A stretch of 64,000 nt of DNA from Macrostomum lignano (lineage: Eukaryota), in assembly GCA_002269645.1 (NCBI GenBank), contig NIVC01000227.1:637525-701524 (forward strand), given 5' to 3'. The notes under the pieces are model-generated. The model was not told where the DNA came from. It did not search any database and saw nothing but the letters and a program-made list of their open reading frames with translations. Position numbers and translations under genes: made by a program. Of the stretch, positions 148 to 51,821 are shown piece by piece; positions within the stretch are counted from its first letter, which is position 1; the number at the start of each line of letters is the position of its first letter.

Positions 148-2004
148 GCATTATCATATAGACTATCGTTTTTTAATGCATTTTTTAATGAAGCTGTTAA
201 GTCACGATAAATTGCCATAGATTATGAGCGAGAAATTCACTGTTTTTATTAATTTAAGCAACAAGAACTTTAACAGGAAACAGATCGAGGATATAGCAAA
301 GCAAACGAATACCAAAGTATTTGATTTTCGACAGTTAAGACTTATAAGTACGAGCTATATATTCTTTGTTAGAATTTGAACGTGCACCCATCGAAGAGGC
401 AGTTGGCAAACATCGGCTGTTGCACACTTCGCAGGTCAACTTGAGCTTGCTGCATGACTGTTGCACTAGTGGTTGCACTCGTAGTCGCATCGGTTGGTGG
501 GGCCAAATTGTCACTAACAGCGGTAGCAACCTTCCTGAGGGTTCTGTCACGCTTGCGTGCGAGATAACGTCGAACAGTGGACTCCGATCGTTGTCCTGTT
601 ACCGCCATTATCTCCCCCATAGGCATTCCTTTGTCGAAAAGATCCGCAATACGCGTGACGCGTATGCAGTGATTCGTGTACTGCTTGGAGAGGTTGCACA
701 CACTACTAACGTGCTTCATGAATGCAGCCAACCAATTGACACCGCGCACTTGCGTAGCAGAGAATCGAATTTGTCCTCCCGAATTGTTAGTCAGAGGGCG
801 CGGAAAGAACGAGGACGAATTCTGCGGTAACAAACTCTGATAATGCAGGATCAACTCCCGCTGAGCGCCGTAGATCCGACTCTGTTTGCGCTGATTTCCC
901 TTGCATTTTGTTGGATCGCTAGTCTGGTTTTTTGTCTTTAACGGCGGCAACGCAAGATATGGATTCCCATCAGCGTCGACTTCTTCTTGGAGCGTGCCAA
1001 CTTGCTTTAGACTTGAAAGGTGCTCTTGACATCTCTTGCCCAGGACATACAGCAGCGTAAATAGTACTTCATCTTGCAACCGTTCTGCTGTAGAACGGTC
1101 AAAATAAGCACGCATTTTCTGTAAATCACCTTCTTCTATTGGCTCGTGCTGATTGACAGTGCCTCCATCAGCATGAAAATGCCGCACCTTTACTCGCAGC
1201 ATCCGGTTGGCAGTGGCGAACTCGTCACTGGAAATACGGCGTAATATTTGTTCGACGCTTCAGCACGAGAGTCAAGTACCTCTGCACTCCAGCACGAATG
1301 CAGACCAACGTAGCTGGCGAATAGCAACTGCCGTCAGATTTTTTTAGACAGAAGTAAAAGAACCTTAAAAATTCGGCCAAGCGACTGTCACTGATCACGC
1401 TTACATCCACAGCACCATGCTTCTTCAAAAACTCCACGAACATTTTGCCATACAGAAACATGTGTTCTCGTGTAGTGCTCGGCAGTGATTCCAGTTCGGC
1501 AACATCCATCGCACTGGGTAAATCAGATAGTTCTGGAAGCTCGACACTAGAAACCGCAGCGGCCTCATCAGCCGTCTCGATTTTAGTCAGGTAGTCGATA
1601 AAATCTCCAAGAATTTCATCGGAACTGTGGTTCACGGCGCTCAGTTCACTCAGAAAATCTAGTTCAGTAGACGAGACGCCATCTAAACTGTCGACCGGTA
1701 GGTTTTTCCAGTTGATAAGAGGCATTTTTAATTCGATTTCTCTCGCTTCTTGCTTCTAGTTCTTAACTTCCTAACAGACTTCATGGTCGAGCTTTTCTTT
1801 TAGAGAACTGTATTCTAAAAAATTGTCTATGGTCCAATTAGTGGGGGCTCTGCCCCCACACCCCGCAAGGGAGCTGCGCCCCCTTGTCCATGCTCACTGC
1901 CGAGCCAATATCTATGGCACGAAGACACTGCAGCGTTACTTAATGGCGTGGCTTAATGGCGTTACATAATGATCAACCGAAAACGCTAGTTTATATGATA
2001 ATGC
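148..2004 (-). mobile_element. Crypton-type tyrosine-recombinase DNA transposon, copy 1
   Basis: Contains a YR ORF (369-1725). It is bounded by a 25-bp inverted repeat with 23/25 identity: 148-172 gcattatcatatagactatcgtttt vs 1980-2004 aaaacgctagtttatatgataatgc. An inner IR also exists (tgccatagat 212-221 vs atctatggca near 1912). No clean terminal direct repeat was found, so the exact ends are uncertain. Confidence 0.75.
369..1725 (-). pseudogene. Crypton/DUF3504-family tyrosine recombinase, frameshifted (about 449 aa if repaired)
   Basis: ORF 1225-1725 has KKSDGSCYSPATLVCIRAGVQRYL, the N-terminal helical motif of the Crypton/ZMYM/QRICH1 family. ORF 369-1202 has HEPIEEGDL, LGKRCQEHL (catalytic R), YTNHCIRVT (HxxR) and TGQRSESTVRRY (catalytic Y; the second His is Q). 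Removing 7 bp at 1235-1243 joins them as TNIISSDEFATANRML. Confidence 0.85.
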
Positions 2005-2108
2005 GATTATGTCTATGGTTTCAGAATTAAATAATGATCAGCAGTCACTCGTGGCTTCGCCACTCGTGACTGTGATCATTATCCAAGTCTGAAACCATAG
2101 ACTTAATC
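2005..2108. other. Long imperfect palindrome capped by GTGGC-TTC-GCCAC, upstream of Crypton-1
   Basis: gtctatggtttcaga (2011-2025) pairs with tctgaaaccatagac (2088-2102). ataatgatca/tgatcattat and cagtcac/gtgactg pair further in. The apex is at 2051-2063. Confidence 0.85.
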
Positions 2109-2285
2109 TACCATTAAGATGGGGCAGTCATCATCTTCTAAGCCAGACTGACTTCATTTTAAAGTACATCGTAAACTATATATAGCAATGTCTATTCCTA
2201 AACGCTCTATGCGGCATTAAAATGTTTGATTGAAGTTCATAAATAAAATCGCCCGTGATAATTCGGGCAAATCCCATTTCTTACA

Positions 2286-2460
2286 CCTATACTAACTATA
2301 GAAATAAGTTGTCTGTCTTGTGTGGTTGATTTTTTGAAATTAAAAAACCGGCTCAACCGATTTTCATCAAACTTGCACCGTTCGATCAGAAATTTTCCAG
2401 TGACGGTACGTGTCGTGGCTAGGAAATCGCTCAATACTAAAGAGATTCAATATTCGAAGA
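2286..2460 (+). mobile_element. Non-autonomous Helitron/Helentron-like 5' end fragment
   Basis: ctatactaactata...gtctgtcttgtgtg...aaaccggctcaaccgattttcatcaaacttgcac resembles the 5' region of invertebrate non-autonomous Helitron families (Lep1/DINE-1 type). No 3' hairpin-CTAG end was identified. Confidence 0.45.
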
Positions 2461-2687
2461 ACATGCTGTTTTGCGAAGGTCAAGAAGAAAGATAAAAGAA
2501 CCGTTATTTCGACAATAAAAGAAGCGTCATGTCAACCATGTAAGACTCGTGGGGCAACTGCTAAGAAGTCAAGGGTCTGGGGTGTTTTCCGAAACTCTGC
2601 TCGAGGTTCATGAAGAATTGCGGAGACATCAAGACTCATATGGGGGGGGGATTGCTGAAATGCTGTGGCTCAACAATACCAAACTCC

Positions 2688-50129: not shown

Positions 50130-50768
50130 CGTGTGGGTCTGCAATTAGTTTAGTGCATATTAAGCATAGCGAAATAAGACGCTGATGTTCGATAACTAAG
50201 CATCAAATTCTTGAATCACAGTTACGCTGACTCACCAGTGAATGAATTCAATTGATTATTGATTGTTGATAGACTGCTGTATTGCACAGGCTAGGTCCTG
50301 ACTAGCAAAATTTGCAACTTGGGGCAGAAGACGCTCTCTGAATACCGGAGTCTCAGAGTTACCGGTGTCTGCCTACCCGATGGAAGAGGAGTTGCTTAAA
50401 ATTACAGTTTTTTCTTCTTCGTGCAAATACGCCTGCCTGTTTGTTGTTAGCCTTGTTGTCAAGGCAACGAGAGGAGGCAATTGAAAGGGACAGGGGAGTA
50501 GAGAAGTCATACGTTGGAAAGGCAAAGAAAAAGAAAGACTCAGCGGAGAGCTTCCCTTCTTTCCGATGCTTGACAAATTCTGAATGTAGAGTGTCGTCTC
50601 AAACAGAAGGGGAACCCACCAGGCATTAAATTTTAATATTGGCGCATCCAAGCGCACTAAACAATGCACTCAGTTTTTGCCCAGGAAGAGACGAAAAAAA
50701 CTAATGCGTTTTTTAAGCCCTTCTACTTCTATACTTGGGAGGCATACATGGGCAAACATGGCTGAAAA

Positions 50769-51345
50769 ATCTATCTATCTATCTATCTATCTATCTATCT
50801 ATCTATCTATCTATCTATCTATCTATCTATCTATCTATCTATCTATCTATCTATCTATCTATCTATCTATCTATCTATCTATCTATCTATCTATCTATCT
50901 ATCTATCTATCTATCTATCTATCTATCTATCTATCTATCTATCTATCTATCTATCTATCTATCTATCTATCTATCTATCTATCTATCTATCTATCTATCT
51001 ATCTATCTATCTATCTATCTATCTATCTATCTATCTATCTATCTATCTATCTATCTATCTATCTATCTATCTATCTATCTATCTATCTATCTATCTATCT
51101 ATCTATCTATCTATCTATCTATCTATCTATCTATCTATCTATCTATCTATCTATCTATCTATCTATCTATCTATCTATCTATCTATCTATCTATCTATCT
51201 ATCTATCTATCTATCTATCTATCTATCTATCTATCTATCTATCTATCTATCTATCTATCTATCTATCTATCTATCTATCTATCTATCTATCTATCTATCT
51301 ATCTATCTATCTATCTATCTATCTATCTATCTATCTATCTATCTA
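50769..51345. repeat. Perfect (ATCT)n = (GATA)n microsatellite, about 144 units
   Basis: Direct reading; no interruptions seen. Confidence 0.98.
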
Positions 51346-51465
51346 GATTTAGTTTATTTAATTTTTTGTAATATATTCGTGCCTACTTTGGTTAACAGCT
51401 CAGCTGCAGAACATTTCCATAGCGTCAATTTAATATTAGCAGTCTGTTAAGCATAACAAAAAATA

Positions 51466-51821
51466 AGTATTGGTTTTGTCAGCCTAACTGAGAATAAAGC
51501 CATCCAAAGTGAGAATCCTGCCTACGCTGACTGCGAAGTGCCTGGCTGCGTGCAGCCTTAGTCTATGGGCCATAGACAATAAAGGACAAGCAAAGTGATA
51601 AAAAGCCATCCAATGTGAGAATCCTGCCTACGCTGAATACGAAGGGCCTAGCTGCGTCCAGCCTAGTCTATGAGCCATAGACTATAAAGGATAAGCTAGG
51701 ATTGGCTATTCATATGGCTCAGAAGCTCAGAAGGTATAAAAATAAAAGAATACGACGCATAGACCAATCGATTCTCACATTGGATGGCTTTATTCTCAGT
51801 TAGGCTGACAAAAGCAATACT
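51466..51821. mobile_element. MITE-like element with 52-bp inverted repeats and an internal ~106-bp tandem duplication
   Basis: 51466-51517 vs 51770-51821 are 50/52 complementary. The duplicated units at about 51496 and 51602 each contain GTCTATG-N3-CATAGAC. Confidence 0.8.

Follow-up and report, generated by a model that had tools for sequence, protein, structure and literature searches.

The region considered here is a 64-kb stretch of the Macrostomum lignano genome (below, the window: 64,000 nucleotides of contig NIVC01000227.1, positions 637,525 to 701,524, assembly GCA_002269645.1). Pfam scans of the window found a rhodopsin-type G-protein-coupled receptor (GPCR), KLC-type TPR repeats, an NWD1-like NACHT-WD gene, an element with reverse transcriptase (RT) and RNase H domains, and two tyrosine recombinase (YR) genes, those of the transposons Crypton-1 and Crypton-2. 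The exact proteins of the GPCR, NWD1-like and C-terminal Crypton-1 ORFs had no database entry, and homology searching with the NWD1-like ORF led to no named relative. No DDE transposase or other transposase domain was found by these scans among the 34 open reading frames (ORFs) of the window. Among eukaryotic DNA transposons, Cryptons are the least understood class, and one of their groups, CryptonA, is the source of the domesticated genes ZMYM, QRICH1 and KCTD1. The subject of this analysis is an octamer, GTCTATGG/CCATAGAC, concentrated in the non-coding DNA of these elements. Two further loci of 21 kb each, L021 and L022, bring the sampled M. lignano DNA to 106 kb.

The window contains 38 exact copies of the octamer on both strands, compared with 1.35 expected (standard deviation 1.16, maximum 6, in 100 dinucleotide-preserving shuffles). 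Seven of them lie within a 39-bp satellite and 31 outside of it. An earlier examination of the window (the sequence-only reading) had arrived by hand at about 30 copies outside the satellite; every coordinate it listed is correct, and three sites, 23161, 31337 and 43960, were absent from its list. When all tandem arrays are masked, CCATAGAC ranks first among the 8-mers of the window (31 observed, 1.6 expected), above the A/T-rich words. The octamer is also overrepresented in L021 (6 copies) and L022 (11 copies), where 0.65 would be expected in each. The enrichment is real and statistically solid; its mechanism is a matter of interpretation.

The edges of the motif are sharp: its 24 one-mismatch variants together occur 38 times, against approximately 37 expected. 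The flanks show weak preferences only: W-T-T precedes the octamer and Y-M-N-A follows. Once the octamer is masked, about 25 sites have 60-nt flanks that bear no relation to each other, the exceptions being inverted-repeat partners and the pair 1825/11774. Since the one-mismatch variants stay at background and the flanks are unrelated, the octamer is not the decaying trace of a single old repeat. Nor does it come from an RNA gene or a short interspersed element, as the window contains no Rfam families or tRNAs. A literature search for the word returned primer coincidences only.

The median distance between neighbouring octamers is 108 nt, and a crisp spacing rule was sought, with nothing emerging beyond a broad mode of 70-190 nt. 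Three tight dyads exist, at 25324-25345 (6-nt spacer), 51561-51577 and 51666-51682 (1-nt spacer each). Such dyads are rarer than the sequence-only reading implied, and inverted pairs 45-160 nt apart, building long hairpin stems, are more typical.

The association with Cryptons was assessed on five copies representing four YR lineages, namely Crypton-1 twice (in the window and in L021), Crypton-2, and Crypton-3 and C4 from L022. The non-coding DNA of these copies carries 23 octamers in 5.0 kb (4.6 per kb, approximately 150 times chance), their coding sequence none in 6.9 kb, and the rest of the 106 kb 25 in 94 kb (0.27 per kb, approximately 9 times chance). The non-coding DNA of Cryptons is thus 17-fold denser in octamers than DNA elsewhere (binomial P = 2.7e-10). 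Each of the five copies has at least three exact octamers, with a range of 3-7 per element, and ten of the eleven octamers of L022 fall within Crypton intervals; the eleventh (8971) lies some 370 nt past a fragment similar to Crypton-1. The octamer is absent from the coding sequences of the KLC-type TPR and NWD1-like genes, as had been noticed before, and from both YR ORFs of the window. The link to the two Cryptons, which was the core of the sequence-only reading, therefore holds and extends to four lineages, and the refuting case that this reading had named, an octamer no commoner near YR elements than elsewhere, is clearly contradicted.

The ends of Crypton-1 are fixed by its second copy (L021 9608-11569), which is 98.8% identical over 1,969 bp and has unrelated flanks on both sides. 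Comparison of the two insertions revealed no target-site duplication (TSD). The YR frame (369-1725) is broken in the window copy into 1225-1725 and 369-1202, and is intact in L021 (protein P0012, 449 aa). The protein is 99% identical to M. lignano BOX15_Mlig009749g2 and approximately 22-24% identical to that of Crypton-2; its domain evidence consists of a weak Phage_integrase match and 24% identity to DUF3504 proteins.

Three octamers and a 104-nt hairpin lie inside Crypton-1 in both copies. The outer octamer of the hairpin is 15 nt from the 5' tip (2117), and the tip is 392 nt from the ATG. In gene orientation the element begins with TTAATGGTAGATTAA-GTCTATGG-TTTC... and ends with ...AACGATA-GTCTATAT-GATAAT, where GTCTATAT (156-163, gene strand) is a two-mismatch variant of the octamer 6 nt from the 3' tip; a one-mismatch variant, CCATAGAT, occurs on the same side at 215-222. 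Neither tip, TTAATGG... or ...GATAAT, falls at an octamer. The tetranucleotide TAAT is present at or near both tips (T-TAAT-GG at the 5' end, GA-TAAT at the 3' end) and, on the two copies available, may represent the short direct repeat typical of Cryptons. An assignment of Crypton-1 to a DIRS or Ngaro element with a nearby RT was considered and rejected, as the RT/RNase H ORFs (5446-7241) fall outside the mapped ends 150-2117. A hairpin module GTGGGGGC-NNN-GCCCCCAC is found beside octamers of Crypton-1, C4 and the ORF-less cluster B (1838-1864, 11745-11765, L021 9859-9888 and L022 6565-6595); its copies are up to 96% identical, and their distance and orientation to the octamer vary.

The ORF of Crypton-2 (25973-27319, minus strand) contains one in-frame stop. 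Its product matches DUF3504 (PF12012, 2.3e-14), Phage_integrase and the QRICH1 N-terminal domain (PF25561) in Pfam; the DUF3504 match and the QRICH1-type N-terminal domain identify it as CryptonA-type. Two inverted arms of 151 nt (25164-25314 and 27550-27695, 87% identical) surround the gene, the outer edge of the arm being approximately 408 nt from the ATG. The 3' region contains a perfect 148-nt hairpin (25469-25616) with octamers in its stem (-65.2 kcal/mol, z = -19.6) and a dyad resembling a recombination core, CCATAGAC-AGCGCT-GTCTATG (25324-25345). In the right arm the octamer CCATAGAC is retained (27603-27610); the corresponding position of the left arm (25254-25266) reads GT-CCATG-CCATG-G, with a 5-bp tandem duplication inside the motif that could be due to slippage or could be a footprint of recombination or excision. 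The A/T-rich ATTAAATATAATCCCC/GGATTAAAT module recurs at 25288, 25656, 27568 and 27653 and within the window is nearly confined to Crypton-2, with a stray GGGGATTAAAT at 13049. A 13-mer, GTCTATGGCCGAG, is common to Crypton-2 (at 27380) and the satellite.

Between the repeats of Crypton-2, Crypton-3 and C4 there is the YR ORF alone, with no RT or RNase H. The catalytic residues Arg-I, Lys, Arg-II and Tyr are conserved in the alignment of all lineages. The histidine of the HxxR motif is present in C4 and Crypton-1 and replaced by Gln in the clade of Crypton-2, Crypton-3 and the related proteins P0001 and P0005 (NQSLRK in Crypton-2, about position 26120); the His/Trp-III position is Gln in Crypton-1 (TGQRS). 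C4 is the only sampled copy with both the full canonical catalytic set and an uninterrupted ORF. Comparison of the YRs with the PDB produced weak matches to XerC-like proteins, IntI4 and XerA, and the best match of C4 was QRICH1. An acidic N-terminal ORF fragment similar to the N-terminus of Crypton-1 (L022 9339-9500, minus strand; 38% over 45 aa) lies head-to-head with Crypton-3, and the octamer-rich interval L022 9500-10000 is common to both.

The position of octamers upstream of the start codon was compared in five lineages, that is, the four above and L023 (SRR28338156), a relative 46-48% identical to Crypton-1 whose 5' region of 250 nt holds two exact octamers, 93 and 183 nt from the ATG. 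The gaps between octamer and ATG form four classes: class I of 99, 81, 93, 93 and 111 nt, class II of approximately 156-220 nt, class III of approximately 285-325 nt, and class IV of 369 and 377 nt. The agreement across lineages is significant for the proximal site (P = 0.004) and overall (P = 0.02), and the orientation of the octamer relative to the gene varies. Crypton-2 and C4 have four exact octamers each downstream of the ORF. The gene is bracketed by inverted repeats of 23-30 nt in Crypton-1, 151 nt in Crypton-2 and 24 nt (96%) in Crypton-3. In Crypton-1 and Crypton-3 an inverted octamer pair is situated approximately 100 nt outside the 5' arm, and in Crypton-1 this pair makes up the very stable terminal hairpin. 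Many copies in both orientations near the element ends and none in coding sequence are the features of a subterminal or arm-type array. A canonical YR core has inverted arms of 11-13 bp around a 6-8-bp spacer at the crossover, and this is not how the octamers are arranged. The sequence-only reading had taken the octamer for a recombinase half-site; since just one site is similar to a classical core, this part of it is replaced here by a subterminal array.

Octamer-bearing elements and other features (window positions unless a locus is named; a sign after a position gives the strand of the octamer)
Feature	Coordinates	Strand	Octamers	Characteristics
Crypton-1, complete	150-2117	-		1,968 bp; two-copy comparison
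Crypton-1 5' terminal hairpin	2005-2108		inverted, 2011-2018 and 2095-2102	inverted repeat I9; DNA fold -38.6 kcal/mol, z = -12.6
Crypton-1 promoter-proximal octamer	1825-1832	+	1825-1832	99 nt upstream of ATG (1725); adjoins GGGGGC-TCT-GCCCCC hairpin module 1838-1864
Crypton-1 3' terminal inverted-repeat arm	150-172			pairs with 1980-2009 (3' terminal 23 nt are an inverted copy of 1980-2002); inverted repeat I10, junction alignment
Crypton-2, CryptonA-type	25153-27706	-		ends from inverted repeats only, single copy
Crypton-2 5' region	27380-27610		27380, 27455, 27603	octamers 81, 156 and 304 nt upstream of ATG (27298); ATTAAATATAATCCCC module at 27426-27442
Crypton-2 3' region	25324-25815		25324, 25485, 25593, 25808	
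Crypton-3	L022 10001-11326			protein 40% identical to Crypton-2
C4	L022 5034-6425	-		intact 463-aa ORF, 33% identical to Crypton-2
Cluster B, ORF-less	11101-11888		11101-, 11246-, 11467+, 11587+, 11774-, 11881-	approximately 5 one-mismatch variants in addition
MITE-like element	19410-20067		19497-, 19973+, one inside each arm	658 bp; 144-nt inverted arms, 96.5% identical
Octamer trio beside MITE-like element	20337-20478		20337+, 20382-, 20471+	weak hairpin, z = -2.9
Cluster E, ORF-less	28153-29166		28153+, 28328-, 29142+, 29159+	abuts Crypton-2
Element enclosed by cluster E	28192-28981			790 bp; 41-nt terminal inverted repeats, 98% identical, tips CCAAAGAC.../...GTCCTTGG; direct 6-bp AGCATA flanks; small acidic ORF 28617-28790
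39-bp satellite	32655-33192	+	7 units	13.8 units, each with GTCTATGG (7 units) or GTCTATGA
Foldback-type element	51466-51821			356 bp; 52-nt inverted ends (96%); two 106-bp internal units, each with a tight dyad GTCTATG(G/A)-G-CCATAGAC
Isolated octamers	23161-23168, 31337-31344, 43960-43967	-	one each	no similarity to Crypton non-coding DNA (masked alignment)

The remaining octamers of the window are concentrated in ORF-less units, some of them similar to miniature inverted-repeat transposable elements (MITEs). When these clusters are compared with eleven Crypton non-coding regions with the octamer masked, the scores are at background, except for cluster B and, weakly, cluster F. Part of cluster B is homologous to the 5' regions of Crypton-1 and C4 (masked score 49 to the Crypton-1 5' region, null maximum 29), and it is the only ORF-less cluster that shares a module, of approximately 60 nt, with Cryptons. 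No YR remnant was found in the ORF-less clusters at 11.1-11.9, 19.4-20.5, 28.1-29.2 and 51.5-51.8 kb, and their termini are not nearly identical to those of an autonomous partner among the sampled Cryptons, as would be the case for non-autonomous derivatives. Simple deletion derivatives were rejected, as the second Crypton-2 module (GGATTAAAT/ATAATCCCC) is not present in them. The MITE-like element may have a TA duplication at its ends, which is ambiguous, and the 790-bp element within cluster E may be an unrelated MITE inserted into an octamer-rich region. The statement of the sequence-only reading that the octamer is shared by otherwise unrelated ORF-less units is thus borne out, as essentially nothing else is common to them once it is masked. 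Its further suggestion that many non-autonomous elements borrow the Crypton YR is unproven, as is the mobility of these units: there is no YR remnant, and the module is shared by cluster B only.

Relatives of these Cryptons show which parts of the layout are conserved. The closest relative of Crypton-2 is L001 (ERZ28573520), from an unrelated metagenome, with 55% protein identity. It contains CCATAGA approximately 12 nt from the GGGGGATTATAATATTTAAT module, as at 27426-27462 of the window, and its 3' non-coding region aligns with the Crypton-2 arm with TCTATGG in register (module scores 54 and 76, shuffle maxima 50). The ATTAAATATAATCCCC module with the adjoining (G)TCTATGG is conserved in L001, L004 and L005. 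The octamer is not universal in the Crypton family, since it is absent from the flanks of 14 distant relatives (24-37% identity, JGI metagenome scan), where two heptamers in L019 were found. Other lineages have repeated motifs of their own: L004 and L005 carry ATAATGGGAC/GTCCCATTAT dyads on both sides of the gene (L004 246-280 and 2050-2080; L005 13, 231, 2011 and 2040), L024 has GC[CA]ATAATGCCCG four or five times in its 5' and 3' flanks, and still other motifs are repeated in the flanks of L014 and L019. Short motifs repeated in the non-coding DNA at the ends therefore look like a general trait of this Crypton family, whose members P0001-P0007 carry PF12012.

The 5' regions do not always follow the proteins. 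Crypton-1 forms a separate clade (19-25% identity), and the 5' region of C4 is nevertheless homologous to its 5' region (score 96, compared with 50) though the proteins belong to different clades. Moreover, a C4-type 5' region without an ORF is found downstream of Crypton-3 (L022 11597-11847; score 170, compared with 66), approximately 380 nt upstream of a TRAF-like host gene (L022 12224-13249). These two cases indicate that non-coding modules move between co-resident lineages. In direct orientation downstream of YR genes, 5' modules occur both in this interval of L022 and in L001 (1846-1989, matching the 5' arm of Crypton-2). They could be tandem copies, circular permutations or solo fragments, and are only a hint at a circular intermediate. 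Judged from the sampled sequences, the octamer characterises the Cryptons of the M. lignano genome as a community. This fits three explanations: a recombinase or cofactor that acts in trans and is shared, recombination that exchanges modules, or a host transcription factor.

By protein, gene content and absence of a TSD (the latter shown for Crypton-1), we classify Crypton-1, Crypton-2, Crypton-3 and C4 as CryptonA elements. They resemble this group in having a single YR ORF matching DUF3504, a QRICH1-type N-terminal domain, no internal RT and a length of approximately 2-2.5 kb. They differ from it, as published, in the inverted-repeat brackets (23-151 nt), the 5' terminal hairpin, and the exact octamer array at conserved positions. 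No terminal repeats were found in animal Cryptons (Kojima & Jurka 2011, PMC3212892) and their boundaries are hard to define (PMC3212892, PMC13465315); CryptonA has been described without terminal inverted repeats (TIRs) or cis-motifs, and the Glomhopper paper of 2026 still lists no repeat description (PMC13465315). The absence of TIRs is part of the literature description of animal Cryptons and does not define them, and its failure in Crypton-1, Crypton-2 and Crypton-3 is the main structural difference. Non-autonomous Crypton derivatives have been published, for example CryptonI-1N1_RPro and CryptonA-1N1_OL (PMC3212892). Our literature search found no paper mentioning Cryptons in M. lignano, and the genome paper describes no such motif.

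A TATGG terminal motif, mentioned in the sequence-only reading for some Crypton groups, does exist in the CryptonS elements of oomycetes and a diatom (PMC3212892), but no terminal repeats are reported in animal Cryptons and it is absent from the tips of Crypton-1. GTCTATGG contains TATGG as its 3' part, and TTAATGG, the 5' tip of Crypton-1, is similar to it. However, in CryptonS, a different Crypton group from different hosts, TATGG is a terminal direct repeat of 5-6 bp at the crossover, whereas the M. lignano octamer is internal or subterminal, present in many copies and in both orientations, and the tips of Crypton-1 are not TATGG repeats. The link is only a resemblance.

We propose, with moderate confidence, that GTCTATGG is a candidate cis-acting protein-binding site of the CryptonA-type recombination machinery of M. 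lignano, arranged as a subterminal or arm-type array. Firstly, sites are present on both sides of the gene, and one octamer pair forms the terminal hairpin by a mapped tip. Secondly, there are no octamers at the sampled host promoters or in the retroelement of the window, and the motif is exact at eight positions. Finally, it persists in ORF-less hairpin and foldback units and in the satellite, and sister lineages have analogous private motifs. The identity of the binding protein, its role in recombination and the mobility of the ORF-less clusters are what we infer from this pattern.

The layout of an element in gene orientation would be as follows: the 5' tip, a hairpin with an inverted octamer pair in its stems, an inverted-repeat arm, one or two further octamers, a last octamer approximately 80-110 nt before the ATG, the YR gene, a 3' region with 0-4 octamers, and the matching arm at the 3' tip. 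The 3-7 sites in both orientations, approximately 70-190 nt apart, would work as arm-type or subterminal binding sites. The recombinase or a cofactor may bind them, bring both ends together by folding and place the catalytic subunits. The element would then exit as a circle, with the predicted junction ...GTCTATATGATAAT/TTAATGGTAGATTAAGTCTATGG... for Crypton-1 (the slash marks the joint), and reinsert without a TSD. A site common to co-resident lineages would allow non-coding modules to be swapped among them, and ORF-less DNA with several octamers, be it hairpin, foldback, MITE-like element or satellite, would be open to action in trans.

Similar arrays are known in other systems. Lambda-family integrases have arm-type sites, and the AAACGG hexamers of Ac/Ds and the 12-bp motifs of En/Spm form subterminal binding-site arrays; non-autonomous elements of such transposons need keep the motif array only. 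As in these systems, the M. lignano octamer is a short exact motif present in several copies and both orientations within a few hundred base pairs by the ends. Unlike them, it has no known binder, is common to recombinases that are 19-40% identical, and also occurs in a satellite and at isolated sites.

Several observations weigh against a recombination-machinery site. Approximately half of all octamers are in ORF-less DNA without other similarity to Cryptons (single copies seen). The 3' end of Crypton-1 has no exact octamer, only the one- and two-mismatch variants, and a single site (25324-25345, with 8-bp arms and a 6-nt spacer) resembles a canonical YR core. Given the replacement of the HxxR histidine by Gln, copies of the Crypton-2/Crypton-3 clade may not be fully active. 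The exact octamer is common to YRs just 19-40% identical (Crypton-1, Crypton-2, Crypton-3, C4), while P0005-P0007, which are closer to Crypton-3 (47-54% identity) than Crypton-2 is (40%), use another motif, and P0016, 31% identical to Crypton-1, yet another. A site co-evolving with its own recombinase should follow the protein tree, and the distribution of the octamer off this tree is thus awkward for a model in which each YR has its own half-site. Finally, the proximal octamer is fixed 81-111 nt upstream of the ATG, as a promoter element would look, and is followed in Crypton-2 and Crypton-3 by TATAAAG or TATAAAT 8-31 nt downstream.

The last two observations support the strongest of the alternatives, a serious rival that we regard as less probable: the octamer may be a host transcription-factor site, promoter-proximal or in an enhancer, which the Cryptons gained or exchanged for expression, with germline and stem cells as examples. 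In that case the ORF-less clusters would represent either regulatory DNA or 5' regions of Cryptons standing alone. The octamer indeed tracks the host genome and not the YR phylogeny, the proximal position agrees across five lineages and comes with TATA-like boxes, 5' regions have been exchanged (that of C4 is homologous to that of Crypton-1), and a Crypton 5'-like fragment lies upstream of the TRAF-like host gene of L022. The Su(Hw) sites of gypsy are a known cluster of host-factor sites carried by a transposon. Such a cluster, like the one considered here, consists of short motifs in the 5' non-coding region of a transposon and tracks the host. A second example is provided by the long terminal repeat elements of M. 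lignano, which are reported to hijack heat-shock promoter elements (PMC12801592). However, a promoter role does not explain the octamers downstream of the ORF in Crypton-2 and C4, nor the pair in the terminal hairpin 15 nt from the 5' tip of Crypton-1, approximately 370 nt from the ATG. The octamer is absent upstream of the host genes of the window (GPCR, KLC-type and NWD1-like) and from the RT/RNase H element, its orientation to the gene is not fixed, and it is embedded in a satellite and in ORF-less foldback units. All-or-none exactness at eight positions, without degeneracy, would also be unusual for a transcription-factor site.

A broader reading appears rather improbable. According to it, one exact 8-bp site would be the common currency of M. 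lignano YR elements, so that whichever recombinase is active would use deeply divergent Cryptons, hairpin and foldback units, the satellite and solo fragments alike as substrates, and recombination at octamers would swap, permute and excise modules. It would account for exact octamers between unrelated sequences and for 5' modules jumping between lineages and to 3' sides. If true, it would be a eukaryotic analogue of integrons or of the site sharing seen in integrative mobile elements exploiting Xer (IMEX). The latter are bacterial elements with dif-like sites that exploit the host-encoded XerCD through a single 28-bp core site. The likeness is that unrelated elements of one host share a short recombination site through dependence on the same recombinase; the difference is that the M. 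lignano elements encode their own YRs and hold many 8-bp sites.

It is unlikely that the octamer itself is the strand-exchange core, similar to att sites, with direct octamers recombining to a circle that reinserts at another octamer and shuffles modules as integrons and shufflons do. Exact octamers between mutually unrelated sequences, as observed, would be expected in this case, and permuted re-integration predicts 5' modules downstream of ORFs in direct orientation, as in L001 and L022, although tandem or truncated copies explain these equally. The 5-bp CCATG-CCATG duplication is exactly at the octamer position of the Crypton-2 left arm, the spacer of one dyad measures 6 bp, TTAATGG at the 5' tip of Crypton-1 is similar to TCTATGG, and TATGG termini are common to CryptonS elements (PMC3212892). 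However, the identical ends of the Crypton-1 copies are not at an octamer, the nearest exact one being 15 nt inside, and in the sole pair of sites whose flanks are shared (1825 and 11774) homology extends to either side of the octamer, which leaves no breakpoint there.

Still less likely is a separate palindromic or MITE-type family, moved by a DDE transposase encoded elsewhere and piling up around Cryptons. Octamers do occur in short TIR-bounded units (19410-20067 with its possible TA duplication, 51466-51821) and hairpins (2005-2108, 25469-25616), and the 790-bp unit has 41-nt TIRs and a 6-bp direct repeat. However, none of these TIRs has the octamer at its tip, the units have no sequence in common besides it, and no DDE transposase ORF or remnant was found in the window. 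The hairpin 2005-2108 belongs to Crypton-1 in both copies, Crypton-1 has no TSD, and homologous Crypton modules of L001, C4 and Crypton-3 keep the octamer in the same positions. The sequence-only reading had named TIRs of a DDE family with TSDs as the finding that would overturn it; such a family is poorly supported by these observations. Chance, composition bias or the decaying relic of an ancient high-copy repeat, which the extreme repeat content of the window might suggest, is hardly credible, as no shuffle came near the observed count, the background level of one-mismatch variants and the unrelated flanks are the opposite of a decaying repeat, and the enrichment recurs in two independent loci.

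To our knowledge, the animal CryptonA group has neither a known recombination site or binding motif nor reliable boundaries. As a recombination-machinery site, the octamer would be the first concrete candidate for a DNA signal used by animal Cryptons. The locus supplies an animal Crypton whose ends are mapped to the base and show no TSD, a terminal architecture that is conserved, one sharply defined 8-bp candidate binding site and, in C4, an apparently intact recombinase. As transgenesis works in M. lignano, both the circle model and the DNA specificity of a DUF3504-type recombinase can be tested there directly. If the octamer is shared in trans, part of the unusual repeat landscape of M. lignano would be explained.

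Some features of the sampled loci stand apart from the Cryptons. A retroelement remnant (5446-7241, minus strand; RVT_1 2e-17, RNase H 2e-11) is located between minisatellites and is octamer-free. Minisatellite arrays with periods of 14-39 bp, 31 after merging and several of them with 30-50 units, make up approximately 16% of the window, and a perfect (ATCT)144 is found at 50769-51345. In L021, two converging octamers 73 nt apart (6807-6887) have no Crypton ORF nearby, and neither has an isolated octamer at 14059, which lies 764 nt upstream of an unannotated gene of 920 aa.

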